NCBI GenBank assembly: GCA_038496445.1
Contig: JALMLS010000238.1
Span: 1-33,834, forward strand
DNA length: 33,834 bases
Reading direction: 5' to 3'
DNA from: Trichosphaerium sp. ATCC 40318
Lineage: Eukaryota; Protista; Tubulinea
Shown here: piece after piece, positions 3,716-33,581 of the stretch
Numbering within the stretch: position 1 is the stretch's first letter
Layout of the letters: each line of letters starts with the position of its first letter
Translations under genes and position numbers: made by a program
The notes under the pieces: model-generated
Databases searched by the model: none
Told to the model about the DNA's origin: nothing
What the model saw: the letters and a program-made list of their open reading frames with translations, nothing else

Positions 3716-4081
3716 TTAAGGCGGGCTCACTATCTGACCACTGTTATCCCATACCCTAAATATGCCTTCTTCTTCTCCATTAAGCATCTCTCCTTTTAAA
3801 TATCTTCCATCACTGTACCACCTCTTCAATGAACCGTGTTTCAAACCTTTCGAAAAAAATTGTTCACAAACTAAGTTGCTGGAGTCATCCCATTTCTTCT
3901 CTTTGCCATGCTTCATTCCTTGTTTCCATGTTACTATTCCTTTAATCACACCGTTTTTATGCCATTTACGCCATTCTCCATTCTTTTGGAGCAGCGAATC
4001 AAAACGAGTCATCAAAGCACTTGTTTTACATAACGTAGGCCTACAACTAGGCATCAGCAACATAAATAGAGTACACAACAT
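3716..4081 (-). CDS. MORN-variant (YwqK-like) repeat protein; termini uncertain, possibly spliced or partial
   Basis: Repeats KNGEWRKWHKNG, KHGKEKKWDDSS, KHGSLKRWYSDG and EEGIFRVWDNSG. Confidence 0.75.
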   Translation of the reverse strand: MLCTLFMLLMPSCRPTLCKTSALMTRFDSLLQKNGEWRKWHKNGVIKGIVTWKQGMKHGKEKKWDDSSNLVCEQFFSKGLKHGSLKRWYSDGRYLKGEMLNGEEEGIFRVWDNSGQIVSPP

Positions 4082-5864: not shown

Positions 5865-6055
5865 TATTAAGTATGAAGATGCCCCGCCGTAAATAAAACT
5901 CACAATAACTGTTTTTGACCACGAAAAAACACGAATATTCTCGAGTATCTGAATTATCTGGAATCTAGAGATATCTTAGATATCTGAAAGTCTTTAACGA
6001 TTGCTGCTTTCTGTACATAAGCTATTAAATTAAACCATAATACTCTTGGCTTGTA

Positions 6056-6568
6056 CGGTGTGCATAGATTTCGGAAAAAAATTTCTAGTTAAGTAGTTGC
6101 TTCAAGGCATAATTGGAACTGCCCTGAAGATATACCGTATTTGAGGTAGAAAAGTCCTGTTCCCTCTACCAAAACAACTATCTAAAAAGCACGGGTCAAC
6201 AAGTATTCAAGCCCGACAGTTAGGAGTTTTTGGCGTGATGGGTGACAGGAGGCTCGACGAACGCACAAATCGTAGTTGGTAGAACTACCTACCTGAGTTA
6301 TGGACTATATGACTAAAATGTCAAAAAAACACGTCGAAAAAATGTCAAAGTGATATTGAACTGTTCGCCACAAAGGGAGATAACTGGGTTCTGGCACTCA
6401 GTCGCCTCTAGGATCTACCTCCAAACCTTCCCCGTAAAGCTAACAAGAGGGGCCTTTCTAAATAGTTCAAAGGATAATTTAGTGTCGAATTTTTGACTTT
6501 TTTTTGACAAAGTTCATTTGGGTTTCCGCAAGGAGTATGTTTTACACACTTTTAACATTTCTGCACCG
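6056..6568. mobile_element. Possible ~510 bp MITE-like insertion at a TA site
   Basis: TA|CGGTG...CACCG|TA ends. Internal inverted (t)gtcaaaaa / tttttgac motif clusters at ~6315-6350 and ~6485-6510. The TIR is very short. Confidence 0.4.
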
Positions 6569-6607
6569 TAGGTATTAATTCAATGTTATTTTAATATTTT
6601 ATTTAAG

Positions 6608-9600
6608 TTATTCTGTACTCTGACCATCTTCAAATAAACTTGCACCAGCATCTCCTGCCTTCTTTGCATAGAATGTGGCAGCTTCAATATATCCAAGTTT
6701 CTTAAGATGAAAAGCGTAATCCAAGTGTATTGACTTTAACAATGTCTCAAGTGCAACAACTTTATCATTATTACCAAGTGTTGCTAGTAAAAACAATAAG
6801 CAACACACAAGCTAGATATGAACAAAAAAAAAAGAGCTGTAATATTCCAAAACGAGCCTACAATGTTGCGCAGCAAATCACGTGTTGAAGACATCGCTAA
6901 GTCAAAAATGTATAAAAAGGTTTGTTGTTAACGTACTTCCTTCCGGTGCCTCATTAAGTAAATCACATTCCTGACATGCCCTAGCAAATAGAGTAGCAGT
7001 ATCAAATTGTCTAAGCTTATGGAGAAGCTGTAAAACCTAGAAAAAAAAGAACAAAATAAGCAAGAATAAAAGTTACAATAAAGAAAGTTGTACCATATGG
7101 AACTCTCCTAGTGTAAGCAAGATATCTATTGATAGTTCTATATTACCAACTAAAATAAGATATTGAACCCATCTCATCATTACTGTTGAACATTCTTCCT
7201 CCTTTAATGTTATCTTCGCAAGCCATGCTGCATCAATCCATCTAACAGGGAAAAAAAATTAATCAATATAAACATTCAATTACAATAAATGACTACGAAG
7301 ACATTTAACATATAAAAAGTGATAGTGATGGCTACACAATACCACCAAATAATCGCAAAAACATAGAATTATTCTAAGCAGAATCTGTGATGCAGAGTTT
7401 TAAGCAAAAACGAAAAAGAAAAAAAAATTCAGGAAAGAAAAAAAAAGTATACAATTCACATACCTATCATAAGACTGTAAGTATCTACAAGCGTCCAAGC
7501 TTTTATCAATAAGACATAATAATTGTACACCTTCATCAAGGTTACCATTAGCTATCAAATTCGTAGCAACAAGCTTAACCTAAAAGCAGAAAACATTAGA
7601 GAAAATAAAACACAAAATAAAAGCTGAGCTCAAGCGCCGTTGTGAGATACTTACAGTATTTCTGAATGTATCAGGAGAAAGAGCAGCTGATACCACACAA
7701 GCCTTTAAAGCATCAGAATAGAACTTTGGATTATCACTAGGCGTTTCTAGAAGCATTTCTAATCAAGAGTGTTAAGGAACAATAGCGAGAAATGTAAAAA
7801 AAAACTTACCAATCGCTTTCTCCTTATTTCCAAGTAATAAATTAAACTCTGCTACTTTTTTAACCAAGTGATAACCAGAACCTACATAATAATGAAAATA
7901 GTTAAGATATGGATAATGAAGATCTTGAGAAAGATATGAGAAGCGAACCTTTTTTCTTTTCGTGTAGTTTAGCTCTTTCAAGTTGACTTTCTCTTACAAG
8001 CTCAGCAGGCTGAAGAAGATCAAAGTAACTCGGTACTCCATCAGTTGATGTTGTAGATGCATTGCTAGCAGAACCTGAATATTTGTAAATAAGAGGACAA
8101 TAATAACAACATCAAGATGAAATTCAAAAAACCAAACAACTTGTTTAACGTACGTGCTCCAAACGATCGTACTGGGACCAATCCCTCATTAGTCACTGAA
8201 CGAGCACGTTCTAAAGACGCTTTGCTACCAATAAACTCAGGGTGCTCAGAGAACTTTCTCAAAGCATTCACAGCAAGCGTCCAGAAGCGTATTTCTATAT
8301 TCAAAAAAACGCACGTGAGTATCATTTTTAAAGCACAATGTCGTTCTTTAAGATTGTCCCTTTACGTACCTCTTTTATCACCAAAAAATTTCGCAGTAAG
8401 TAAAGCACGTGTATCAGTGCCTTGGCATGCTTTTAAAGAATTCACAAAATCAGTGCCAATCATTCCACGTATATTCTTATTCAAATCAGAAAAGCTTCCT
8501 TGCTTCTGTAGATTTTTAGGAGCACTCTCCTCGAATGCATTAAAAGCATGCTGAAGCATAGCTTTTAGAAATAGGGCTCTAAAATGTAGTTAATACAAAT
8601 ACTCAAAAGCGTCGTCAGAGGAAACGAAAGATCGGAAGCAAAGAAAAAAATAAACAATCGAAGATTGACATACTGTTGAGGTGGTAGTAGAAGTGGGGAA
8701 TGAATAGGATAAGTAAGCGCTGATAATCGTATGGCGGAATTAGAAATCGTCAATGACTTATCTACAATACGAACACAGCCATCACTTGTAGCTAAATAGA
8801 AGAGTTAAAACTCAGTTAAATCGAAAACAAAAAAGTTACCAATGATGGGTTGCGTTTCTGTCAACCAATCAACATCAATTGCCTTTAACTGACGACTCTT
8901 AAAGTAATTACCGACACTAACCTATTGAACAATATTAGTTAACCCTAATAACACAAGATTTAAGGCTTAAACCTCATCACACTTACCCTCAGGTTATAGT
9001 CAAGATCCCAAATACCAAAATCACCATCATTGAACAAAACAAATATCTTATGAGAAGTACTTGATGGAGAGAATCTTATACGCCTTACAAGACCTCTACC
9101 TGTGGCAAATACCCTTTGATAGACATTTTAATAAAGTAATAGATGACAACCCATGACGTACTGTTGCTTTTTTTTCTGAAAGTTCCAAACATGTAAATTT
9201 CCAACAGTATCACCTGAAACTAGAAAGTGGTCTCTCCAAGCAATAGAAGAAATAATACCAACACCAATCTCTGCATGTATATTCGATGCGGATACAAAAT
9301 TATTTTCAACAACGTAATTACGTAGAGTGCCATCAGGTGTTGTAAAGACGAACTGTTCTTTGTTTGAATCAACTTAAAAAAAAAGTCAGAAAACAAAACA
9401 ACAGCTCAAAGAATCAAGATCATCAAGCCACAAATAAAAATGGTATTCAATTCGTAAATATGTGTACTTACTCTCTTTATTTCCTGTAAGTGGAGACCAT
9501 TCAAGTGCTGTAATTTGTGAAATAGGATGAATCTGACGCAATAAATTTCCTGTTTCCATATCCCATATTTGGAAAGGCCTAAAAAAAACTCCGATTAACT

Positions 9601-14059: not shown

Positions 14060-14610
14060 ATGCAGTCCGTTTCCAACTATGAACAAACAAAACCACAGTG
14101 GTATCATTGCCGAACAGAGTGGCCAAGAGTGTTTGTTGATAGTCTGAGTGAGTCCATTAACGGTGAAGGTAGGTTCAAACTAAAACGCAATGTTAAGCGT
14201 CTTTTCTCAGCAACCAATTTCGCTGGTCAAAGAGTCAGTTGTTTGTAGAGGAGCGCTTTTAGACTACTGCCAGTGAAAAGATTAACTTGTATGTAGCCAG
14301 ATTCAACACAGGATCACAGCTACCTATAATTGCATCTTTCTTTGTTGAGGGTGTGCGCAAACTTGACAAAATTGTACAACGAAAGTCGTTAAGTTGGAGT
14401 GTAGCTAAACTTCCTAATTAAGCTGTAGGTTCAATGAATCCAAGCAGTGTCATCAATTGAACGTTGCAGACGCTTTAGTATTCATTGGTAGGCACCTATG
14501 TCAGATGTAGAAATTTGTAGCGCAGACAGCTACAGTATGGACCCTGAAGATGATGAATTGGATATGTTTGGGCTTGGCAATGGCGAAGAGCTTGGAAACA
14601 AAGTTTTTTA
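14060..14610 (+). pseudogene. Possible degenerate spliced gene remnant
   Basis: Exon-like blocks are bounded by ag/gt sites (gaag|gtaggt, gagg|gtgtgc, ttg|gtaggc) and include an in-frame stop. No family recognised. Confidence 0.25.
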
Positions 14611-16629
14611 GTTTAGTTCACGTTTATACTTCAAGAGTTTTACACGTTCTGCAAGTGAGAATCCTAAGTCTTTTAATATGGACCCAGTAATATCATCTAT
14701 ATCTGCTTCAGCTTCTTTTAGGAGAATGGAAAGTTCTGAAGATCTTTTTTTATCTATCCCTGCTCTTTCTAGAATATCTTGCCAATCACCGTTTACGTTG
14801 GGACTGTATTGAGTGTATACATTATCATCAAGCGGATTATGAATTAGATAGGAATCCTTGAAAGGAGCATCAATAGGAAAAAATACAGTCAAAAAACGAG
14901 GGAGGTACATTTGCTATAGAACCAAAAGATCTATGAGAATCACGCCAAGACATATTTGTAAGCATTTGAGACATATTAGGTATGCTTCTGTCAACGTTAG
15001 GAACATTAGGAGGTTCATCATCACCAAGTGTAACCTAAACAAAGATAAATACAAAACTTTTATCACGTATTTTCTTTAAATTCCCCGTACATCACAAGGA
15101 CTACTTGAATTACTAGCGGATGTTGAGTGTTCGTTTTTGGTGTCTTTGTTCGCCACATGATTCATCGCTCTCTGTATGGCTTCTTCAATAGCATACTGAT
15201 CTTCTGGTTTGTTTCCAAATTTATGCTTTTCGAGATCATCGCTTGCCCAATATTCCTTTGAAATGTACTTATCTTCAGGATGATCCTTGATACCCCAAAA
15301 TACATCACGTGACTCTCTTTTAGCTGTAATATTCTCGCTCTTCCCCTTGTCTACTGTGTCATACTGTTTAGGCTCAACAATCACTTCTTGTTGGGCGTAT
15401 TCAGCAGTACTTGTTGCTGGTATTACATCCTACACAGCAAATTAGTAAAAGTATAAGCCTTGAGGTGTAAACTGATCACTGACTTTTAAGATAGGTACTA
15501 AATTTGAATAAGGGCTTACCTCTGTTATTTTGAAACGTATAGTCTGTTGTGTAGCTTGGCCATAATTGTTGAGTCCTGTCATTCTTAAAGTTCCGTCTCC
15601 CATAACAGTAATAGAATGATCATACTTTGAGCAATGCGCCAAACAAAAACTGCCTTCCTCTTGAAAGAACTGAGATTGTTGCGGAACCTTGGTGGTGTAG
15701 TAGTTATCTATCTCTAGACCCCATCTATATAATGTACCATCCTTACAAAGAGCGAAAGATGATTTGGATCCAGCAGATAAAGAAACAATTTCCGATTTTA
15801 TTCCGGAAATTATTCCAAGCCGATTCTCGTTTCCTCTTCCTAGTTGACCAAACGTATTATTACCAAAAGATATTATAGTATTATCTTGTGTTAATAAAAG
15901 GCAATGAGGATAAGCAGAGTTTCCGATGGCTATATCTATTATACTCTCAGTAAAAGGTAACTGACGTATCTTTTTCTGTGATGTGAATTGAAGACTTGTA
16001 TCGTCTCCCCATATAAAAGCACACTTGTTTTCTGATAGAGCAAGAACATGTCTTAGACTTGGTGTTACTTTGATAATATGAGAAAGACCAGGTATCTGTT
16101 GAGGAGACGTTACTTTCTTCGACTGAAAAGCATATCCCAAAATGGAAAACTCGTTGGGTCCCCATGAGAAGACAAACCCTTTTTTAGACACAGCAAAGCT
16201 AGATACACTAGCGCTTACTGTAGATATACCCTTCAACGAAGGAACTATCGTTGGTATCCTTATAGACCTAGAATGGCCAAGTCCAAGCTCGCCGTGGTTG
16301 TTTTTTCCCCAAGAATAAACTCTTCCGTTTGAGCAAACAGCTAAGCTATGATGCGATCCAGCTGATATGCACGTGACTTTTACAAGAGATTTTATAGGCG
16401 TTATCGATACTAACTTCAATAGAGCGTTTATAGGAGAAGCTACAGCGTTTGGCTTTGTTCTGAAGCCTTGAAGGAATCTATTTGCGAAAGATTTACCGAG
16501 TTGACCATATTCGTTTCTTCCCCAGCTATACACGCGCCCATCGTCACCAATTACCATTGAAAAATGCTTTCCAGTTGCTATTCTATGACATAACTTCGTT
16601 TGGGCCTTGTCGATGCTGTTGTTGGCCAT
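14608..16629 (-). CDS. RCC1-repeat beta-propeller protein with a linker and a C-terminal SAM-like domain, 4 exons
   Basis: RCC1 repeats VYSWGRNEYGQLG, VYSWGKNNHGELG and ISFGNNTFGQLG. Donor GAG|gtaagc, branch point tactaat and acceptor tgtag|GAT join the 15076 and 14608 ORFs in frame. Tail WQDILERAGI...ILKDLGFSLAERVKLL is SAM-like. Confidence 0.85.
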
Positions 16630-16717: not shown

Positions 16718-16843
16718 AGACGGCGTGAATGTTAAGTGGAGCGTAGATACATGATAACGTGGCTTCTACTACCTTCAGCAGGTAAATTATGTTATCACGT
16801 GTTTTTTTTTGAGAATTCCGCAGACTCGAAAACCTGTGAGCAT
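16718..16843 (-). repeat. ~120 bp module, inverted copy of 23992-24108
   Basis: Its reverse complement shares a 32 bp identical start (atgctcacaggttttcgagtctgcggaattct), cacgtgataacataattt and a 24 bp identical end (ctccacttaacattcacgccgtct). Confidence 0.92.
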
Positions 16844-16888
16844 CCCAGAATTTCTCGTTACACCAACCAAACAGGAAGCGACAAAAAA

Positions 16889-20019: not shown

Positions 20020-23000
20020 TTACTTAAATGGTGTCCAAGTGTTTTGGTCGAACATCTTCTTATACTCTTTTGCTTGCCAGTGTAAAGGTTGTCTTGTATG
20101 AGTGCTCAGCATATTTATATTTCCTGTTATACTCTCTGCATATTTCTTACACTTTCTTTTATCTTTTACATTTCGGAGGCGAGATAACTCCACCTAAGTG
20201 TATATTAATGTTAAGTACAAACTGTTAAAGAATTAAAAAAAGAGAAGTGCACCTTTTTTAGATTAGTACAGTTCTCTTCAATTACATCTAATGTCGCTTC
20301 ACTGATGGTTGTTCCTTTCAAACTCAAAAACAAGAGAGAAGGAAGTGGACAATCAAAATGACCTCTGAATGATTCATCATCAAGAGCACTGTTTCCATTG
20401 AGTATCATCGTTTCAAGATTATCAAGTGGATTATCACCCCAACTTATCTTTGATAGCTTGCTGAAACCACAAACAGATAGATACCTCAATTGAGGAGTTT
20501 GGAGCTTCAAACTTTCAATGTGAAACCATGTTTTAACTTTAGCTGTCAATTCTGTTCATAGTGTGATGTTAGAACAACCATAAATGCGTATGTAACAAAA
20601 ACTTACTCAAAGTCTTGAGACATGTATTGGATATACATATCTCTCTTGTTTTAGATGTAATTAATCGATTCTTGATAATAAGATTGTTGATAATAAGAGT
20701 CTCAAGGTTGACTAGTTTGTTGATAGTTTGAAAGGTTAAAGGCCTATTCAAGTCACCGGCATCTGTTATCTCCAAGTGTGTTATATTTCTTGTTCTATTT
20801 GAAAAGCAAGGGAAGCGTGAGTACTCTAGATACAACTCTTTCTGGAGAAAAAAATGATTAGATGTCTTTTATCTCAAACTAAAGATTTAAATTGTACAAG
20901 TGAAGGACAATCAAGTACTATTGAATTTAAATTGTCTAGAATACTTGCTGCAGAATATGTTTGCGAGATGTATTCTAGTTTATCATGGGAAAAACTCCAT
21001 TTGCTATCCCTAGTGTTGCCTTTTTTAGAGTGAAACATGAGGTATTTCACTGTGGGAAAGTTAGTAATGTTGCAAATGTTTTCGCAACCATCTATCTTAA
21101 TAGCTTCTAATGATGGGCAATTCATTAACAAATTGGCAAATGCTATTGATTCCATGTGTAGCAGTTTAAGTGATGGTGAGAATAGCTTCAACGCTTTTGC
21201 TGGGACATTCACACAACCGAATGATCCAACCTCTAAGTTTGGATAATGTACTTCTAGTTTATCTGGTATAAAACGCAACCATGCTTGCTTTAGATTTGGT
21301 GTATTGAGAGTTTCCTAAGTAACACGTTAAAACAAGTGTACTTCAATAAAAAAACATACAAGTCCTTCACAGTCATTACAGTCAAAGATCTGAAGTGTTG
21401 TTGATTCAATACATTCTGGTACTGCCTTTCCGCTATGAGTAGTTATTACAAGGGTCTTGAGTTGCTTTAGGAGTGAGGGGAATATCTAAAAATAACAGTA
21501 AATTGTTTGTGCTATAAAGCCTAAGTTAAGAAAGAAATAGCAATGCAGACTTGCACTCATAATAGAGTCATCACTAACATCATGGAGATATAATGTTGTG
21601 AGGTTTGGCATATTGAATTCTTTTATACTTGTACATGTATCGTAATCCAAATGCTGTAGTTTTAAAGATCTATTTGTATGTGTAAGCAAGAGTACAAATG
21701 GTATTGATAATGGAATAGTGTTTACGTCACTTGAGGAAGATCAAATATATAACCATCGCTCTGAAATATGATATGAAGTTGTAGTATCTCTAGACTCGGT
21801 ATCTTTTTAAGACAAGAAATAAATGCTTGTTGGTATAGATTGGAATGACTTTCAACTTTCAAGTGTTCTAACCTGCTAGAAGTTAGCTAACAGTACAAAA
21901 ATTCGCATTTGTACTCTATAAAATGGTGCACATTGTTTTCATTGATCATGTCAGTGTCCTGTAATTCACATGATAAATACCTCAAATGCTGCAGTTGTCT
22001 GTTGTTCAAATGGAACAAGTTAGTAAATAAAGCATTAAAATAGCATTCATACTCTTTGGTACATTTACTAATCTGTTCGTCAAGTGTTGAACGAAAGCCA
22101 AGTGAAACATCAAGCTCAGTGATCGGACACTCCGACATTATTTCATAAAAACAGTCCAATGAAAGTGACATCTTGTTAAAGCTAGACACAACCTACAGCT
22201 CAATGTTTGTATTCATATGGGTGAAGAGGTAAGGAGTACATTACAGTACGCACCAATGATTGAAGATTTTTAAATTGTTTTGCCATTTCTTTCAAAGCAC
22301 AACAATCGTCTTGTTGTAACTGCTTCGGAATAATACGTATTGATCCAATAGATTGTTTATTTGAGATCCTTTTGAGTGTTTTTCTAACAGAACCTGATTA
22401 GGCGTAAGTTACTGTGTGGAGAACTTGGCGTTTGGGTTCACTTACCTGAAATAGTGATTTGTTTGAGCAGGTATCTTTGACACATGTCAAGCCAGTATTG
22501 ACACACTAATTTACAGACACTGTGATTGCTATAGGGCAGAAAACTAATGATGTGCACAAGTACTTCCAGTGGTACAGTATCGTTTACCTTTTTTTTAAGT
22601 CAATAAGAATAAAATAAGAAATGAAACGTACACATGAGCCATTTGTGTTTGGCGAAACTCCTTGTTTTCTCTTTGTAGATGGTTGCTGAACATTATCAGA
22701 TAACGGCAGGCGTTGGACTTCATCTGTATTTGTACTCTACATCTGATTTAATACCAACGCTGACACGTGATACGAAAACGTGAGGCAAACAGAAAATTTT
22801 AAGTCAAAACTGAAAACGAGGTATTACGAGTCGGTGACCGAAATTTACCATGTGTACCGAGGTATTACGCAGTTTAGAGATTTCTTGACATAATAGCAGC
22901 CGCAAATCTTATTTTGACGTCAATTAGCACTCTTGCACGTTATTTTAATGCGTACTAGCGTTGATAGACATTGTATTTTTGATTCGTGCGCTTGTTAAAG

Positions 23001-23152
23001 ACATCAATTGTTTTCCGTCTAAATTCAACTCTCTGGTACCCGTTTAGTGTGGTTTGTTCGAATTAATCGTACTTTGCGTATTTTGACACTTCTCCAAGAC
23101 CCACGCTTTCTAACCAGCCACATACCTCATCTACGGACCAGTACCTATCCAT
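20020..23152 (-). CDS. SAM + F-box + LRR protein, copy 1
   Basis: SAM: MDRYWSVDEVCGWLESVGL..ELNLDGKQLMSLT..LRLLLCQEISKL. F-box: VPLEVLVHIISFLP..VCKLVCQYW. LRRs MPNLTTL, YPNLEV, CPSLEAI and TPQLRYL. Ends TWTPFK*. Confidence 0.88.
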
Positions 23153-23991
23153 AGCGGTTACCTAATTGCTTTTTAAGCAATTTTCAGCACGAACAGTTAA
23201 GTCAAAGAATTGATCTTTTTATTGACATTTTTTGAGCTCAATTTTGTTCATCACATGAGTAAGATTGAGACTTAAAAGAGTTGTTGTACCGTGTAATTCA
23301 TACTCAAGAGGTAAACAAGCACACATACTGTAGTGCAAACTCATACCTAAACCTTTTTCATCCCTCATGATAGTGGATGCTAGCATGTAATAAAACAGTT
23401 TTGGTTGTTAACATGAACTACTTAAGTTACAATTGTAAGTCTGGAGAGACAAAGTCGTCAGACTTCTTCGACGGTGAAAATATAGGTGACAAGAAAGTGA
23501 GAGACTTTGTACTGTTGCAACAAGAGCTACCCATACAAGTATGCAATCTCAACCCACCTCCTTACATCCCTAATTGCGAGTCAGAGGTCTGCCTCTTGCG
23601 GTAATGACACATTGCGTGTGTTAAAAATCACTTCTCGTTGTTAATTGTGTAAGTCGGCTTAGAAGCCAACCATTGATTGCTTTGCTGTAAAACGAGAGGA
23701 TTACCTTTTACTAACCTTCCTGTTTAGATTCAGTAATATATATAGATTTGGATATGTCGTTGTTGCTGCACTTAAAGTGGTCGCTCCTTTCAAGACAGGT
23801 TGCTGTTAACACAAGGTATGATACTGAGTTGACCTATCAGGGGAAATAAGTACAAAGAGAAAACAAGCGACTTGTATGTCATTTTTTAAGTTTGCAACTA
23901 TTCTCATATTTTTTTTTATTTGAAATTTAATAATTGTACAACTATATTGATGCTACACCGGTAGGACAAATATATCACGTGCTATACTAGT

Positions 23992-24108
23992 ATGCTCACA
24001 GGTTTTCGAGTCTGCGGAATTCTAGAAAAAAATCACGTGATAACATAATTTGTCGGCAGTAGAAACAATTATCATGTGTTTGCACTCCACTTAACATTCA
24101 CGCCGTCT
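23992..24108 (+). repeat. ~120 bp module, inverted copy of 16718-16843
   Basis: See the partner entry; contains atcacgtgat. Confidence 0.92.
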
Positions 24109-24378
24109 TATATCCCTTGCAGACTTAAGTGATAAACAAATTTCATCGTCAGCAAATTGATCGCAGTATTTTACCTAGATGTCAGAGTAGGTTGCTTACT
24201 TTAACATCTCCGAGCAATGTAGGTACTCGCCACTAGGGGTCAAAACTCACTTGTATCGCTTGTTGAGGTATCTTCCATGGAGATCAACAATGACAGCTCT
24301 AAAAAGGCGTGATTTTCACTAAAAAAGTGTTGCCTTAACTGATAATTGCTTAAAAGTCAAGCAGATTAGATAACCGCT

Positions 24379-27300
24379 ATGGATAGGCACTGGACCGTGG
24401 ATGAGGTATGTGGCTGGTTAGAAAGCGAGGGTCTTGAAGAAGTGTCAAAGCACGCAAAGTACGATTAAATAGAATAAAAACGCACTAAACCGGTACCAGA
24501 GAGTTGAATTAGACGGAAAACAATTGATGTCATTAACAAGCGCACAAATAAAAAATACAATGTCTATCAACGCTAGTACGCATTAATATAACGTGCAAGA
24601 GTGTTTAGTAACATTTAAATAAGATTTACGGCTTTTATTCCTTCAAGAAATCTCTAAACTACGGAATACCCTCTATTCAAAGCAAACACAAGTCTTTCGC
24701 ATAACGACGGTACGCATGGCAAAATACCGAAAGTCTGGTGTTATATTTTCTCAGTTTTCTGTGAACATTCCTTTGAACTTACTTTTCGCTTCTCATACGT
24801 ATTTATGCGGCTAACCAATTGAATGATATTTCGGATTGAGTTGTGTTCGTTATCTCTTTTGTGTTTGTTAACAAATTAATAGGATGACCATACACGTGAC
24901 ATAGCATTGTTACAACCTACAGAAAGACAACAACTATCTAGTTCAAGCAACGACACATCATCGTCAAATGAAGTTCATAAACCACAGCAACGATTATCTG
25001 ATGAGTCTGAGCAACCATCTCAACCTCCGTCTACCAAGAGAATACAACAAGTTGCAACAGCAAACACTTTATGTGTATGTACATTTATTTTCCCATCAGC
25101 AGAAACCTAACCATGTGTTTCACTTCTAGGTTAATGATACAGTGCCGTTAGAAATTCTTATACACATCATCAAGTTTCTGCCTTTTAGTGATCACGGTGT
25201 ATGTAAATTAGTATGTCAATACTGGCTTGACATGTGTCAAAGATACTTGCTTAAACAAATCACTATTTCAAGTACGTGAATAGCTTACAAACTCAACTTC
25301 TCTACACAGAAACTTACAACCTTCATTTTAGAAGCAGGTTCTGTTAGAAGCACACTCAAAAAGATTACGAACAAACCATCAGTTGGATCAATACGTATTA
25401 TTCCTGAGGGGTTAGACTATGATGATTGTCGTGCTTTGAAAGATATGGCAAAGGAATTCAATAATCTTCAATCATTGGTGCGTACTGTACAACAATATAA
25501 TAGCACCTGGTTGCTACAAATAACATTGAAGCACTCACCAAAAGCCCGTGTGACAACGAGGGTATCCTCACAATGGAAGCTATCCCTTGGCATTGACTAT
25601 TGACTAGTGCCAAAGTATAATGCATTGTTGATTCTAATTTGCAGCAATAGGTTGTTGATAGCAAAGAATACTTTACAGGACAATTTCAAAAGGTAAACTC
25701 ATACTAAACAACCTCCTTTCTTAGCTGATTTTTAAGTTTTCATGGGATTGGGTTGATGAAGTAATGACAGAGTGCCCAATAGCTAAGCTTGATATTTCAT
25801 TAGGTGAATATTCAATGCTTGACGACAGTCTTGCCTATTTTACCAAAGAGTACAGCCTTGCTTTTTTAAAATGTCATGTTAACTGAAATACAACAGACAA
25901 TTGCAACACTTGAGGTATTTATCATGCAACCTATGTAGTGGAAAGACAATTGATGATAGTAATGTGCATTATTTCAAAGAGTAAGGAACATCCCATCAAG
26001 ACAAGTTAACTGACTTTTAATACACAATAGGCTAGAACACTTGAAGGTTGAAAGTCATTTAATGCTAAAACAACAGCCATTTATTTCTTGTCTTAAGAAG
26101 ATACCAAGCCTAGAGATACTACAACTATATATCAAAAAGTACAGTGGTACTGGTGGATATATATTTGATCTACCTCAAGTGACGTACATCTAATAACAAT
26201 CTTTTTTTTGGTTATCTTACTTCATTGCATTAAACTGTTTACTATCTAGATCTTTACACCTTGCAAGTTGTTCTGTAAGTGACAATATAAAAGAATTTAA
26301 TATGCCAAACCTCATTGTATTATCTCTGTTTCAAATTGCTGATGACACAATTATGAATGTAAGTCAGCATTTGCCTTGCTATTAATTTCTTTCACAACTT
26401 TCACTTTACTTTTACTAATTCCCATATCCTACTACACTTCTTGCCTAAACCGCTTACTGTTACTTTTAGTTATTTCCCTCACTCCTAAAGCAACTCAAAA
26501 CACTCAAAGTAAGAAGAAGCGCACTACCAGCACATATTGAATCAACAACACTTGAGATTTTTGACTGCGATGATTGTGAAGGACTTGTATGTTTTAATTA
26601 GATTTCTATTGCTAGAACAGTCATCTTAATGTCTTGATTAGAAAACTCTCAATACACCAAACCTAAAGCAAGTGTGTTTAAAGCACATACCAGAAGTGTA
26701 TTATCCAAACTTAGAGGTTGGATCATTTGTTACTGGTTGGGTAGCTAAACCAGAAGAGGTAAAGCTACTCTCACCATCACTTAAATTACTACACATACAC
26801 TCATTAACATATGTCAACTCATCAATTAACTGCCCGTCATTGGAAGCCATTATGCTAGAAGATGGTGAAGATATCTATAACATTGTTAACCTTCCTACAG
26901 TGAAATACCTCATTCTTCACACTAAGAATAGAAAATGGAGTTTATCCCATGATAAACTTGAATACATCTCACAAACAAACTCTAAACATAGTCACAAAAC
27001 TAATTCAGCAGTGATTGATTGTCCCTCACTTGTACGATTTAAATCTTTAGTTTGAGATAAAAGACATCTAATCTTTTTTTTCTCTAGAAAGAGTTGTATC
27101 TCAGGCAAACAAAGTTTCCTCTTCTTTCAAATAGAACACGAGATATAACACACTTGGAGATAACAAATGTTTATGCCTTCAATAAGCCTTCAACCTTTCA
27201 TACTATCAGCAAACTAGTCAACCTTGAAACTCTTATTATAAACAATCTTATTCATATATATGGCAAGGACATGAGTATATCTAATACATGTCTCAAGACA

Positions 27301-27928
27301 TTGAGTGCGTTTTTTAGACCACACTTATTCATTGGTTGTTCTAACAGTTTCCCAAAACAGAATTGACGACCAACAAACTTGTTACAGGTTTAAAGCTCGA
27401 GACACCTCAATTAAGGTTTATATCTGTTTGTGGTTTCAGTGAGCTATCAAAGATATGTTGGGGTGATAATCCACTTGATAATCTTGAAACGATGATACTC
27501 AATGGAAACAGTGCTCTTGGTGATGAATCATTCAAAGGTCCTTTCAAGAAGTTTCCATTTCCTTCTCTTTTGTTTTTGAGTTTGAAAGGCACAGCCATTA
27601 CTTCACAGACATTAGACATAATTGAAGAGAATTGTACTAATCTCAAATCAGTAAGTGCATTTCTTCCATAGTTCATACTATCAACGTTAATAACATTTAG
27701 GTGGACTTATCTCGCCTCAGTAATATTAAACCCAAAAGTGAATGCAAAAAATATGCAAAGAGGATAACAGGACAAACGAAGATCCAAGTAAATAAAACAG
27801 ATGTACCAAGAGCGCCAACAAGACAACCTTTACACTGGCAAGCAAAAATATACAAGAAGAGGTTGGACTGGAGAACTTGGACACCGTTCAAATGCAACAA
27901 AATGGATAAATACCGAAATAGAAACTGA
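24379..27928 (+). CDS. SAM + F-box + LRR protein, copy 2 (1 bp deletion in exon 2, possibly disrupted)
   Basis: MDRHWTVDEVCGWLESEGL and VPLEILIHIIKFLP..VCKLVCQYW, with LRR exons collinear with copies 1 and 3. It reads gaattagac where the paralogs read gaatttagac. Confidence 0.82.
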
Positions 27929-28393
27929 AAGCCAGTTTGTATTGTATTGGTTAGAAAACGTTGTGACAATGAACAATATAAGTGTGCTTCTAAAGTAATA
28001 TTTTGTTTGATGATTGAGTACCATGATAGGGTGTCTATTAAATACAAGACATGTTGAATCTAGTACTGTTAAGTAACTTAACCAGGAACAACTTTCCTCC
28101 GATAAATCGCTATTGTGTACATGACATTGTGATGTTGTTATGACCATTGTAGCTTAAGCCCTAGTGTATCCGAATAAAACAAAAGAAAAAAACCTGGAGC
28201 ACGTGACACTATTAGTTTAGGCCCACATGAGCAGAGACTAAAAACCAGGAATTGCATTTTTCTAAACTGATGTGCTAGTGAGCATAGATTAAAAAATACT
28301 TGCAAAAACCTTTGTTCATGATACCGTTTGGTGTCAAAGTTTTTCATGGAAGTCAGACAAATCTAAAGAAGCAGTATTTATTTCATTTTATTC

Positions 28394-31300
28394 TCACTTA
28401 AATGGTGTCCAAGTGTTTTGGTCCAACATCTTCTTATACTCTTTTGCTTGCCAGTGTAAAGGTTGTCTTGTATGAGTGCTCAGCATATTTATATTTGCTT
28501 GAATTTCCTTTTGTCCTGTTATCCTCTCTGCACATTTCTTACACTTTCTTTTATCTTTTACATTACGGAGGCTAGATAAGTCCACCTAAATGTATTTTAA
28601 TGATAGATAGTACAAACTGTTAAAGAATTAAAAAAAAGAGAAGTGCACACCTTTTTTAGATTAGTACAGTTCTTTTCAATCAATTCCAATGTCTGTAAAG
28701 TAATGGCTGTGCCTTTCAAACTCAAAAACAAAAGAGAAGGAAATGGAAACTTCTTGAAAGGACCTTTGAATGATTCATCACCTAGAGCACTGTTTCCATT
28801 GAGTATCATCGTTTCAAGATTATCAAGTGGATTATCACCCCAACATATCTTTGATAGCTCATTGAAACCACAAACAGATATAAACCTTAATTGAGGTGTC
28901 TCGAGCTCCAAATTTTCAAGGGAAAATGATGATTTAGTGTTAGCTATCATCTCTGTTGACATTAGAACAACCAATGAATGAGTATTGTCAAAAAAAAACG
29001 TACTCAAAGTCTTGAGACATTTATTGGATATACACATGTTACTTCCAAACATATGAATAAGATTGCTGATAATAAGAGTTTCAAGGTTGACAAGTTCCTC
29101 GATAGTATGAAAGGTTGAAGGCCTATTCAAGTCACCGGCATCTGTTATCTCCAAGTGTGTTATATTTCTTGTTCTACTTGAAAAGCAAGGGAAGCGTGAG
29201 TGCTCGAGATACAACTCTTTCTAGAGAAAGAAAAGATTAGATGTCTTTTATCTCAAACTAAAGATTTAAATTGTACAAGTGAAGGACAATCAAGTACTAT
29301 TGAAGTTAAATTGTCTTTGGCTTTTTCTACTGTTTGTGAGATGTATTCTAGTTTATCATGAGATAAACTCCATTTTCTGGCCTCAGCCTGAAAAATGAGG
29401 TACTTAACAGTAGGAAGAATAGCAATCTTACTAACGTTATAACAACAATCTACCATAATGGCTTCCAATGATGGGCAATTCATTGACAAGTTGATTTTTT
29501 GTTAATGAGTACACACGTAACAATCTAAGTGATGGTGGTAGTAACTTTGCTTCACCAGTAGCCCAATATCCAACCTCTAAGTTTGGATAATGTACTTCTA
29601 GTTCATCTGGCACACTACCCAACAATGCTCGCTTTAGATTTGGTGTATTGAGAGTTTTCTAAGTAACTGACATTAAAACAAGTGTACTTCAATAGAAATC
29701 TGATTAAAACATACAAGCTTTCGACAGACATTTTTGAGTGTTGTTGATTCAATATGTTCTAATGTGCTTTGCCTCACTTTCAGTGTTTTGAGTTGCTTCA
29801 GGAGTGAAGGGAATACCTAAATATAACAGTAAAGTTGCAAGCAAACAAAAGTTAAAGATCATCTGATACTGACTTACATCCAATGTTGAGTCATCATTAA
29901 CATCGTCAAGAGATAATATGGTGAGGTTTGGCATATTAAATTCTTTTATGCTTGTACATTCATACCCTAAATTTAGTAGCTTTAAAGATCTATTTGTATG
30001 TGTAAGCAAGAGTAAAACAAATGGTATTAATAATGGAATAGTGTTTACGTCACTTGAGGAAGATCAAATACATAACCATCGCTCTGAAATATGATATGAA
30101 GTTGTAGTATCTCTAGACTCGGTATCTTTTTAAGACAAGAAATAAATGGCTGTTGATGCTCTGAATTACTTCTAACTTTTAAGTGTTCTAACCTGTTTGT
30201 GGTGTCAACAAACAAATATACAAATAAAATGAAAGCAGGCTATGTCGTACTGTTTGAAGTAGTGTACAGTTTTTTCATTGATCATGTCAGTATTCTGTAA
30301 TTCACATGATAAATACCTCAAATGCTGCAGTTGTCTGTTGTTCAAATGGAACAAGTTAGTAAATAAGAAATCCATTAAAACAGCACTCATACTCTTTGGT
30401 ACATTTACTAATCTGTTTGTCAAGTGTTGTATAGTCAAGTGAAACATCAAGCTCAGTGATTGGACACTCCGACATTATTTCATAAAAGCAGTCCAATGAA
30501 AGTGACATCTTGTCACAGCTAGACACAACCTACAGCTCAATGTTTGTATTCATATGGGTGAAGAGGCAAGGAGTACATTACGCACCAATGATTGAAGATT
30601 TTTAAATTGTTTTGCCATTTCTTTCAAAGCACAACAATCGTCTTGTTGTAACTGGTTCGGAATAATACGTATTGATCCAATAGATTGTTTATTTGAGATC
30701 TTTTTGAGTGTTTTTCTAACAGAACCTGATTAGGCTGTAAGTTACTGTGGAGAAGTTGATGTTTGGATAGGTACACGCACTTGAAATAGTGATTTCTTTG
30801 AGCAGGTATCTTTGACACATGTCAAGCCAGTATTGACACACTAATTTACAGACACTGTGATTGCTATAGGGCAGAAAACTAATGATGTGCACAAGTACTT
30901 CCAGTGGTACAGTATCGTTTACCTTTTTTGTTTTAGTCAATAAGAATAAAATAAGAAAAGAATTACGTACACATGATCCATTTGTGTTTGGCGAAACTCC
31001 TTGTTTTCTCTTTGTAGATGGTTGCTGAACATTATCAGATAATGGCAGGCGTTGGGCTTCATCTGTATTTGTACTCTACATCTGTTTAATACAATACTGA
31101 CACGTGATAAGTTCTCGTGGCAAAAAGAAAATTTTTAAGTCAAAGTGAAAACTTATTCCTGGTGACCCACGTGATATAAAAGTAGACTATTGTCGCAAAG
31201 GACAAAAGCTTCAAACTACGAACAACAGAGAGTAAAACTGAAAATGAGGTATTATACATACTGGTGCTATGCGAAAGAGTGTTTGCTTTGAATTGAGGAT

Positions 31301-31589
31301 ATTCTGCAGTTTAGAGATTTCTTGAACGAATAACAGCCGTAAATCTTGTTTTGACGTCAGTCAACACTTTCACGTTATTTTAGTGCGTACCAGCGCCGAT
31401 AGACATTGTATTTTTTATTTGTGCGCTCGTTAATGACATCAATTGTTTTCCGTCTAAATTCAACTTTCTAGTAGCATTTTAGTGCGGTTTTGTCTAAATT
31501 AAATTGTACTTTGCGTGCTTTGACACTTCTTCAAGACCCACGCTTTCTAACCAGCCACATACCTCATCTACAGTCGAGTACCTGTCCAT
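28394..31589 (-). CDS. SAM + F-box + LRR protein, copy 3 (+1 frameshift in a T-run near 29495-29500, possibly disrupted)
   Basis: MDRYSTVDEVCGWLESVGL. The F-box exon is nearly identical to copy 1. One LRR exon is split between ORFs 29437 and 29253. Confidence 0.82.
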
Positions 31590-32014: not shown

Positions 32015-33581
32015 TCAGAACTCCATATCCATCATATCATCACTATCTTCTCCATTGTGAAGTTGGAGGTACATCCGTAAAAGATTAGGTATATTTTCTT
32101 CACCATTTTGTATACAACGCGCAATAAAATTACGAATAATCTCTGAGTAAAAGAGTAAGAACAAAAAACATCAGAAATTTAAAGCAGTTTTTTTTGCATT
32201 TCTTGGTCCATTTACCTTCATCATGCTGAGGAGGTTGGTTATCCATTTGATTATCGCCTGCGCCTTCTATTACTATAGAACATATTTGTTAGAACCATTC
32301 ATGGACGTAAAAGTATCACTTTAAAAAAACTAGTAATTTTTTCAAGCATACCTTGATTACATCGCATAGCCTCACACCATTGATCAGCCACACCAACGCC
32401 AAGTTCTGTATCATGACTTTCCATATCTTTAGGTGTTATACCCTCTGGCTTTAATGGCATATTCCACGAAGTGAATATAACCTGAAACAAAAAAAAATTA
32501 AAAAACCAATTTCACCTCAAAGACACAAGTACTGCACGTGACTGCTTTCCCTGTACTGGATATCCTCATAACAACGTACCCAACAACTTTGTAACATAAA
32601 TCCCCAATTATCTTTATGGCGGCTAACTACATAAGCCGGGAAATGTCCAATCTGTATAAACGACCCTACATACAAGTAAGTCATTACTCATTTTTTCCTC
32701 TCTCAACGAGTTCATTGAAATCCCCTGGTTTAGTACTAAAACAACAAAAAAGAGAAAAAGTGACTTGACGTCTAAATTAATCAAAGCTACTTGACACGTC
32801 TTTCGTAATTAAAAAAAACGGGATCAGTGCGTAATTTAGGTTATAACTCTTATAATATAACTTTTGTAGACCACCATAAAGTAAATGAAGCCATTACAGA
32901 GGTGTCATACCTTTAGGTCCTTTTTTCCCAGCTGTAGATTTAACAAAACGCCATTTGAAACTAGCCCAAGCTTCTCTCTTTAGTGGTTCATTATCTAGCC
33001 TCTCTAAATCTCCATTTGGGGCATAGCGGACAATAAGCGGAGCTCTTCCACTCCACCAAGGGTCTAGTTCTGTCCAACCAGAACCTATAATCAAGTAAAC
33101 GCCAGAAGGCAACACGAGGGATCAAACAAAAGCAAGAAAATCTATTTAAATTTCCATTCGGTTTTTTTTTTGTAGACTAGAACACGCGTTGCAATTGAAC
33201 GCTTTGCTTGCAAGTAACGGTTCATAGCAATTAATTAACGAAAGTAAAGTTGTGACACCGCTAGCTTACTTCAAACGGACTAACCGTACCCGCTGTTGCT
33301 TTGTATCTGAAATTCCAGTGGAATTTTGTAAGCTCTTCCATTGTTAGAGACGTTCTGTGCGCGTCTTGAATAGAGAATATGAGAGCTTCCTTTGGTGATC
33401 TCTTACGCATTTCTATCGCCTTCTGAGGTACGTATACTTTACTACGCCATACGTCATAGCATAAGGAGTCCCATAGAAGGGGATGATCGGCTATTCCCGT
33501 CCATCTTTTGCAAACTGATCTACAGGCTTGCAAGTCCGGTATATGGAGAAATCGGAACACAGCAAAGAGCGAATCGTCCAT
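32015..33581 (-). CDS. F-box protein, not of the LRR type, multi-exon; the 5' end may extend upstream beyond 33581
   Basis: F-box DDSLFAVFRFLHIPDLQACRSVCKRW...LW. Then WNFRYKATAG-SGWTELDPWW, WRFV, HFPAYVVSRHKDNWGFMLQSCW-VIFTSW and an acidic tail DDMMDMEF*. Confidence 0.85.

Follow-up and report, generated by a model that had tools for sequence, protein, structure and literature searches.

Three paralogous genes clustered in the genome of the marine amoeba Trichosphaerium sp. ATCC 40318 probably encode substrate receptors of the F-box/LRR type for SCF ubiquitin ligases, particular to the Trichosphaerium lineage, equipped with an added SAM domain and shaped by gene conversion. The genes, here called A, B and C, lie at positions 20020-31589 of the window (the whole 33,834-nucleotide stretch of DNA that was analysed), in the order -,+,-. 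In the mechanism we propose, the F-box would dock on Skp1 of the Skp1-Cullin-F-box (SCF) ligase, an LRR-like solenoid of about 25 repeats together with a basic tail would hold the substrate for ubiquitylation, and the SAM domain might self-associate. The cluster would have originated by tandem and inverted duplication, with gene conversion continually reshuffling it into a mosaic. Its variable patches would then correspond to inter-strand loops inside a block that escaped homogenisation between A and C.

An earlier note on this DNA had described three such paralogs, each with an N-terminal SAM domain, an F-box and many LRRs. Hand-built spliced models recover all three genes at these positions and in this arrangement, and the nine motif strings quoted in that note are present exactly as written. 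In each encoded protein the SAM domain comes first, followed by a linker, the F-box, a series of about 25 short LRR-like repeats and, at the end, a basic tail that is conserved. The main features are as follows.

20020..23152, minus strand: gene A, 15 exons, 786 aa, intact (hand-built spliced model, GT-AG introns, no internal stop)
22828..23152, minus strand: gene A exons 1-3, SAM domain, interrupted by two introns (40 and 48 nt)
22446..22587, minus strand: gene A exon 5, F-box, from a Pfam profile match
20253..22393, minus strand: gene A exons 6-14, about 25 LRR-like repeats of 17-28 aa, from the repeat register
20020..20193, minus strand: gene A last exon, basic C-terminal tail, conserved in A, B, C, P0001, P0002 and P0004
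24379..27928, plus strand: gene B, 16 exons, 822-828 aa, intact; the most diverged of the three paralogs
28394..31589, minus strand: gene C, 15 exons, 5' half close to A, reading frame broken once
29490..29503, minus strand: homopolymer run in gene C exon 12, one base too many for the reading frame (1-nt frameshift)

The donor of intron 12 in gene A was moved 18 nt upstream under the guidance of transcript P0004; both donors are in frame, and the alternative one yields a protein of 792 aa. Gene B carries an additional 32-nt intron and a longer linker. Introns of the three genes measure 32-186 nt, all of them GT-AG save one GC-AG intron in A, and these sizes agree with the published Trichosphaerium genome, in which introns average 75 bp (PMC10521059). 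The GC content of the genes is about 35%, the same as that of their flanks. Intact open reading frames in A and B, each interrupted by 14-15 introns of host type, count in favour of the receptor reading. The surplus base at 29490-29503 is either a real frameshift or an assembly error, and gene C is probably a young pseudogene, or else the product of misassembly. Two other impressions of this region were discarded: stops that appeared to break the SAM region were rejected once the 40-48 nt introns were recognised, and an apparent repeated element downstream of each gene proved to be the last coding exon. The window also carries a MORN gene and one more F-box gene.

Profile searches support the N-terminal SAM domain, given that the spliced exons 1-3 of A exceed the curated Pfam cut-offs for both SAM_2 (29.1 bits, cut-off 20.5) and SAM_1 (27.4 bits, cut-off 23). 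For the L001 homolog the corresponding domain reaches 24.5 bits, and the nearest solved SAM structures are those of liprin-beta-1 (E = 8e-6) and ETV6/TEL (E = 3.5e-4). The domain has a dN/dS of 0.31-0.43 and is placed 45-80 residues upstream of the F-box. Fbw7, Cdc4 and beta-TrCP possess a dimerisation (D) domain just N-terminal to their F-box. The SAM domain occupies the same position and therefore, by analogy with these proteins, may mediate self-association, yielding SCF complexes that are dimeric or of higher order. The likeness is one of a module placed in front of the F-box, since the D domain, a short helical motif, bears no relation to SAM. Moreover, SAM domains are in many cases monomers, or partner with RNA or other molecules, such that sequence alone is not decisive on this point. 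The fusion nevertheless suggests another way of assembling the dimeric or oligomeric SCF complexes for which other F-box proteins use a D domain.

The F-box is supported too, with exon 5 of gene A surpassing the curated cut-offs of the profiles PF12937 (F-box-like, 32.1 bits, cut-off 24.3) and PF00646 (F-box, 25.5 bits, cut-off 20.5). This exon is 85-96% identical between A and the other two genes, and the F-box of A yields weak matches to the F-boxes of FBXO42, FBXL17 and TIR1. Its dN/dS of 0.07-0.08 between A and B reveals strong purifying selection, which fits the expectation for a working SCF adaptor and, at the level of sequence, implies a partner that is probably conserved. For the basic C-terminal tail, which matched no Pfam family, the same comparison gives 0.25-0.27.

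The proposal of many LRRs was only partly upheld. The short repeats, the regular strands of their predicted fold and the fact that all significant fold matches are LRR proteins speak for it; however, the Pfam cut-offs for LRR profiles were missed, the best scores being 18.2 bits for LRR_4 (cut-off 27) and 14-17.6 bits for LRR_At5g56370 (cut-off 27). Because these scores fall below threshold, the basis for the LRR assignment is the periodicity of the repeats together with their predicted fold. The motif P-(N/S)-L is frequent in the repeats, and AlphaFold models of the paralog P0004 and of exon 12 display regular short strands at moderate confidence (mean pLDDT 62 and 73), with blocks within residues 150-420 of the P0004 model mostly at pLDDT 60-88. 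These models were made from small clean alignments (A2, A3), and an all-exon alignment to P0004 (A1) was discarded, its repeats being stacked. Foldseek matches at E <= 1e-3 are all LRR proteins, but with TM-scores of only 0.2-0.5, and the matches include the F-box receptors COI1, TIR1 and MAX2/D3. For the exon 12 model (pLDDT 72.9) the best Foldseek E value is 0.11, and the match list consists mostly of LRR proteins. Atlas neighbours are LRR families without exception, and a PDB sequence search with the repeat region returned no match.

The family is almost restricted to one lineage. When 1.84 billion protein representatives were scanned, three matches resulted, namely two Trichosphaerium transcripts and one metagenome contig; some 17 residues of the 205-aa query were translated intron of gene C, but the matches aligned to its true exon sequence. 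The metagenome contig derives from another organism (GC 45%) and preserves the same order of SAM, F-box, LRR and tail at 27-42% identity. Transcripts of Trichosphaerium sp. ATCC 40318 from MMETSP0405 (P0001, P0003 and P0004) represent paralogs that are 43-58% identical, and P0004 is colinear with gene A over six predicted exon junctions. Paralogs of A, B and C are transcribed, and the copies known are the three described here and at least two further transcribed ones. Scans of metagenome and viral contigs found no extra paralogs, and IMG/VR contigs, queried both with a single protein and with an alignment, gave no relative. An architecture search with P0004 and exon 12 likewise returned no match, a blank made little informative by the length window of that search. 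A literature search found no described SAM-F-box protein and no protein with the same domain order, in line with the earlier note, which did not recognise SAM-F-box-LRR as a characterised architecture.

We consider the patchy variation among the three genes to be best explained by gene conversion acting together with loosely constrained loops, rather than by demonstrable adaptive hypervariability. Judged from the distribution of shared sites, the cluster is a recombination and gene-conversion mosaic, in which three segments are most relevant.

20944..21632, minus strand: central diverged block of gene A, exons 10-12 with introns 10-11, containing the three variable patches of the earlier note
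27389..27647, plus strand: B-C gene-conversion tract, arm in the penultimate exon of gene B (inverted repeat of 259 nt, 95% complementary)
28654-28912, minus strand: B-C gene-conversion tract, partner arm in gene C (inverted repeat of 259 nt)

Over the whole genes, informative sites mostly unite A with C (AC 448, AB 153, BC 165), whereas in the central block the three genes are equidistant (AC 65, AB 66, BC 47). The flanks of this block are 93-100% identical between A and C, and runs of AC sites are significant (p <= 3e-4), as is an unbroken run of 16 BC-only sites (permutation p < 1e-4). Within the block, dS between A and C is mostly 0.4-1.2, and their intron 10 is 70% identical compared with 93-98% for the flanking introns. 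High dS and diverged introns together point to mosaic ancestry and not to codon-targeted change.

The earlier observation of a conserved scaffold with variable, indel-bearing residues after the strands is well founded: scaffold positions differ at 10-15% of sites, compared with 27-39% elsewhere, and all indels among the paralogs fall into the inter-strand loop class. In any LRR, such loops are under the weakest constraint. Selection was estimated from pairwise Nei-Gojobori counts, for which three sequences provide low power. Whole-gene dN/dS is 0.47-0.58; the LRR region reaches 0.57-0.59, about eight times the F-box value, and the central block 0.56-0.65, which is significantly below 1 (p = 4e-4 to 9e-3). 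Across A, B and C, dN/dS is significantly above 1 in no window, the two windows with pN/pS > 1 having p = 0.35-0.57. Predicted concave strand x-positions are not more variable than loops (dN/dS 0.47-0.68 vs 0.62-0.74), meaning that this pairwise version of the proposed check on LRR sites detected no nonsynonymous excess at predicted ligand-contact positions. The characterisation of the LRRs as rapidly diversifying and locally hypervariable is not sustained by these values. Against B, every region has a dN/dS significantly below 1, and values below 1 in the F-box, SAM, tail and LRR segments count for the receptor reading. Nonetheless, for a housekeeping receptor an LRR value near 0.6 is on the high side, and it would also fit a combination of sites under constraint with sites under positive selection, which is beyond the resolution of three sequences. 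In recently homogenised regions, pN/pS between A and C is 0.79 and not different from 1, and the ratio of nonsynonymous to synonymous changes is 21:5 in the C lineage and 15:8 in the A lineage, for a neutral expectation of about 3.9:1.

It seems appropriate to ask whether these genes instead form a diversifying, immune-like repertoire of SCF receptors against viral or endosymbiont proteins, in which selection keeps the central LRR block different and conversion homogenises the rest. We regard this as unlikely. The three-way equidistance of the central block between A-C flanks of 93-100% identity is what such a repertoire might produce, as are the indel-rich loops and an LRR dN/dS about eight times that of the F-box. 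There is also precedent in expanded, positively selected nematode F-box families (PMC8120010), and the host amoeba is reported to contain much DNA derived from giant viruses (PMC10521059). However, the dN/dS of the block (0.56-0.65) is significantly below 1 and no window is significantly above 1, predicted concave strand positions of the LRRs vary no more than loops do, and the introns of the block have diverged too, so the divergence extends beyond coding positions. Moreover, just a handful of copies are known. The fuller proposition, that selection has kept the central block diverse against homogenisation in a SAM-oligomerising SCF immune repertoire directed at giant-virus or symbiont proteins, is less likely still. 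If it is true that selection keeps this block diverse, the cluster would become a candidate innate-immune repertoire in an amoeba with heavy giant-virus traffic. On present evidence, it is an interesting but ordinary lineage-specific expansion.

Kinship with the F-box and FNIP/LRR-repeat proteins of giant viruses, through lateral transfer in either direction followed by domestication, strikes us as very unlikely. F-box and MORN are the commonest domains among the putative giant-virus transfers in the Trichosphaerium genome (PMC10521059), the MORN gene and the further F-box gene lie in the same window, and F-box/FNIP and LRR proteins from Gaeavirus, Hyperionvirus, Harvfovirus, CroV and megaviruses turn up as fold matches to the paralog model, with E values from 2e-4 to 5e-3. 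Even so, these fold scores are no better than those for cellular LRR proteins, with identities of only 10-16%, the Pfam matches listed for the exons of A (E <= 1) and for P0004 (E <= 0.1) include no FNIP family, and the search of IMG/VR contigs yielded no relative. Each gene moreover has 14-15 spliceosomal introns and a GC content of about 35%, as in the flanks. Least probable of all is a decaying cluster of non-functional duplicates that drift with neutral variation, since the frameshift of gene C, the near-neutral 21:5 of its lineage (about 3.9:1 expected) and the A-C pN/pS of 0.79, not different from 1, are outweighed by the intact frames of A and B (about 790-830 codons over 14-15 introns), a dN/dS against B significantly below 1 in every region and as low as 0.07 in the F-box, the transcription of paralogs, and an architecture kept in a second organism at 27-42% identity.

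The closest counterparts of A, B and C in architecture are the FBXL receptors (Skp2, FBXL3 and FBXL17, and TIR1, COI1 and MAX2/D3 of plants), in which an F-box likewise precedes a long LRR solenoid, here a predicted one. FBXL receptors lack an N-terminal SAM domain, their repeats are unlike the short (17-28 aa), P-(N/S)-L-rich units found here, which remain under the Pfam LRR cut-offs, and the basic C-terminal tail is specific to the Trichosphaerium family. No orthology to a named FBXL, TIR1 or COI1 emerged from the 1.84 billion representatives or the PDB search with the repeat region. F-box/LRR receptors are well known, and what sets the present genes apart is a SAM domain in front of the F-box, an order for which no described example was found.

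The F-box families of Caenorhabditis and plants are lineage-specific and clustered, combine a conserved F-box with a faster-evolving substrate-binding part, and have been proposed to serve in immunity (PMC8120010, PMC8665587). The Trichosphaerium genes share the clustering of lineage-specific paralogs and this contrast in rates. However, the worm and plant families comprise hundreds of members with demonstrated positive selection, whereas few copies are known here and no dN/dS significantly exceeds 1; furthermore, most of their substrate domains belong to the FTH or FBA type instead of being LRRs, and a SAM domain is lacking. Plant NLR/R-gene clusters evolve by sequence exchange, and a nonsynonymous excess at solvent-exposed strand positions is their hallmark. 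The genes described here have no NB-ARC domain and no such excess at strand positions, but by analogy they resemble these clusters in their tandem and inverted LRR paralogs, their conversion mosaics and their blocks escaping homogenisation. Near-confinement to a single poorly studied amoebozoan lineage, combined with the conversion mosaic, makes the cluster a compact case for studying how protist receptor clusters diversify.

A final comparison concerns the F-box-FNIP proteins of Dictyostelium and giant viruses. The viral proteins are without SAM, whereas A, B and C are intron-rich genes with no FNIP among the listed Pfam matches. What they have in common is an F-box joined to an LRR-like solenoid of short repeats, occurring in amoebae and viruses, and fold matches to FNIP/LRR structures (e.g. 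CroV 7zal, and 6nyr) are obtained at E values of about 1e-4 to 1e-3.

The window is eukaryotic in character (GC ~35%, long ORFs absent), and spliced models of its three SAM-F-box-LRR paralogs, genes A, B and C, were built from their end-to-end alignment, in which short GT-AG introns interrupt conserved coding blocks:

Gene A, 23152..20020, minus strand: 15 exons, no internal stop
Gene B, 24379..27928, plus strand: 16 exons, no internal stop
Gene C, 31589..28394, minus strand: 15 exons, intact but for one frameshift
GC-AG intron, gene A intron 10, 21486-21554, minus strand: GT-AG at the same intron in B and C

With introns of 32-186 nt, these models match the published figures for the Trichosphaerium genome (mean intron size 75 bp, ~8 introns per gene; PMC10521059). 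In gene C, the homopolymer at 29490-29503 is one base too long, which shifts the frame in exon 12. Two other readings were rejected: the SAM region is not stop-containing, being split by introns of 40-48 nt, and the apparent repeat after each gene is the last coding exon, because transcript-derived relatives read straight through it.

Two introns deserve separate mention. A predicted 32-nt intron specific to gene B (25693-25724), with the branch-like motif TACTAAAC, accompanies an insertion of 9 residues that A and C lack. Intron 12 and the sequence around it (20842-20897, 27032-27087 and 29221-29276) are 92-97% identical across the three genes, a conservation exceeding that of most exons. It offers two in-frame donors, GTACAA or GTACGA and, at a distance of 18 nt, GTTTGA; a paralog transcript favours the upstream one. 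This may represent an alternative 5' splice site by which six residues are gained or lost.

Both the SAM domain and the F-box proposed in the earlier note were recovered in gene A, where spliced exons 1-3 score 29.1 bits against SAM_2 and 27.4 bits against SAM_1, and exon 5 scores 32.1 bits against F-box-like and 25.5 bits against F-box, all above cut-offs. The closest solved SAM domains are those of liprin-beta-1, ETV6/TEL, neurabin, Shank, polyhomeotic and SARM1, and the F-box aligns weakly to those of FBXO42, FBXL17, TIR1 and KDM2B. Over the other ~540 residues, short units of 17-28 aa, built on an LxxLxL-type strand that in most cases follows P-(N/S)-L, recur ~25 times. The accompanying claim of many LRRs is in keeping with the repeat pattern and the predicted fold, but no repeat reaches an LRR cut-off of Pfam (18.2 bits at best, vs 27). 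For fold prediction we used P0004, a contiguous transcript-derived Trichosphaerium paralog of 476 aa, whose model (mean pLDDT 62; residues 150-420 mostly 60-88 per ten-residue block) has one strand per 10-25 residues. At E <= 1e-3 its Foldseek matches are exclusively LRR proteins (NLRP LRRs, COI1, TLR4, plant F-box/LRR proteins); TIR1 and MAX2/D3 narrowly miss this threshold. Gene A exon 12 folded alone (pLDDT 72.9) gives a match list made up mostly of LRR proteins, none significant, and Atlas neighbours are LRR families without exception. Given the repeat register, the two models, the Foldseek matches and the Atlas neighbours, we have moderate confidence that this region is an LRR-like solenoid. 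The proteins end in a conserved basic tail, the product of the last exon, which matches no known Pfam family.

With the C-terminal 205 residues as query, a full HMMER scan across 1.84 billion cluster representatives returned three proteins. Two are Trichosphaerium transcripts, and thus paralogs (43-58% identity) are expressed; every close protein relative is an MMETSP0405 peptide from Trichosphaerium sp. ATCC 40318. The third, 27-42% identical, lies on ENA metagenome contig ERZ25072490 (9.8 kb, GC 45%), where positions 5980-9380 encode SAM, F-box, repeats and tail arranged as in genes A, B and C. It adjoins ammonium-transporter and His-tRNA-synthetase-like fragments, which argues that a second eukaryote carries the family. 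The IMG/VR and JGI metagenome contigs scanned held no relatives. Literature searches of limited reach found no described SAM-F-box protein; within that reach, a SAM in front of an F-box is an undescribed domain order.

The earlier note had also described a conserved LRR scaffold interspersed with variable, indel-bearing residues. This description is correct: all nine quoted strings are present, differences affect 10-15% of scaffold positions, 27-34% of strand x-positions and 31-39% of loop positions, and indels occur in loops only. Nei-Gojobori counts were made on the codon alignment of the three genes, with the surplus homopolymer base of gene C removed for this analysis only.

dN/dS among genes A, B and C, by region
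Whole gene: 0.47-0.58
F-box: 0.07-0.08
SAM: 0.31-0.43
Tail (against B): 0.25-0.27
LRR region: 0.57-0.59
LRR scaffold positions: 0.18-0.35
LRR strand x-positions: 0.47-0.68
LRR loops: 0.62-0.74

Hypervariability, as distinct from variability, was not supported: dN/dS is below 1 in every region and class listed, which is most of the pattern that the note had itself set against its reading, in a comparison of three sequences with low power. In the central block of gene A (20944-21632), which contains the three quoted patches, pN/pS is 0.56-0.65, a significant shortfall from 1 (p = 4e-4 to 9e-3). In the A-C comparison, two short windows exceed 1 (2.7 and 1.7), both non-significantly (p = 0.35 and 0.57), and the expected ligand-facing sites are not the maximum of variability.

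Sliding-window comparison of exons and introns among the three genes points instead to segments of differing age. Between genes A and C, identity is 93-100% over the stretch ~22800-21633 and once more close to the 3' end, but only 50-87% across 21632-20944, where introns have diverged as well (70% in intron 10 vs 93-98% in introns 4, 6, 7 and 9). Around intron 8 (55% identical) lies another, smaller diverged patch. Informative sites favour AC overall (AC 448, AB 153, BC 165) and are divided within the central block (AC 65, AB 66, BC 47); in the SAM exons the three genes are equidistant, ~90% alike throughout. An unbroken run of 16 BC-only informative sites (permutation p below 1e-4) marks a B-C conversion tract, coinciding with a 259-nt, 95% inverted repeat between B and C (arms 27389-27647 and 28654-28912). 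A-C dS, for the most part 0.4-1.2 within the central block, drops almost to 0 in the flanks; the locally variable appearance thus largely reflects segment ages set by gene conversion or recombination, to which the usual freedom of LRR loops adds.

Changes were polarised with B as reference, only where A and C are sisters. There are 21 nonsynonymous and 5 synonymous changes on the C lineage (neutral expectation ~3.9:1; small numbers) and 15 and 8 on the A lineage. The C-lineage ratio, together with the frameshift, points to gene C as a young pseudogene. Because the extra base sits within a homopolymer, an assembly error is possible.

The strong constraint on the F-box suggests that these proteins would act as working SCF adaptors. 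The SAM occupies the position at which a dimerisation domain is found in other F-box proteins, which makes SAM-driven oligomerisation a reasonable inference by analogy. That the cluster forms an immune repertoire of receptors retains some probability: the central block escapes homogenisation and the LRRs evolve ~8 times faster than the F-box, but selection tests lend this no support. There is also a hint of giant-virus origin, in that no domains are commoner than F-box and MORN among the putative viral transfers of the Trichosphaerium genome (PMC10521059) and fold matches include viral F-box/FNIP proteins; however, these matches are not better than cellular ones, viral sequence relatives are absent from the collections searched, and each gene has 14-15 introns. 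Pure decay of the cluster would fit gene C but not genes A and B.

Several further features lie in the window:

33261-33581, minus strand: fourth F-box gene (F-box-like, 39.5 bits), adjoining gene C and unrelated to the A/B/C family
3716-4081, minus strand: ORF with a MORN_2 repeat (38.7 bits)
15442-16629, minus strand: large, single-exon RCC1-repeat gene (WD40_RLD, 202.7 bits)
14608-14910, minus strand: ORF downstream of the RCC1-repeat gene, no Pfam match at E <= 0.01
16773-16858 and 23977-24062: 86-nt inverted repeat, 84% complementary

With the MORN ORF and the F-box genes, the window holds the two domains commonest among putative giant-virus transfers (PMC10521059). The arms of the 86-nt inverted repeat lie upstream of the RCC1 gene and of gene B, respectively.
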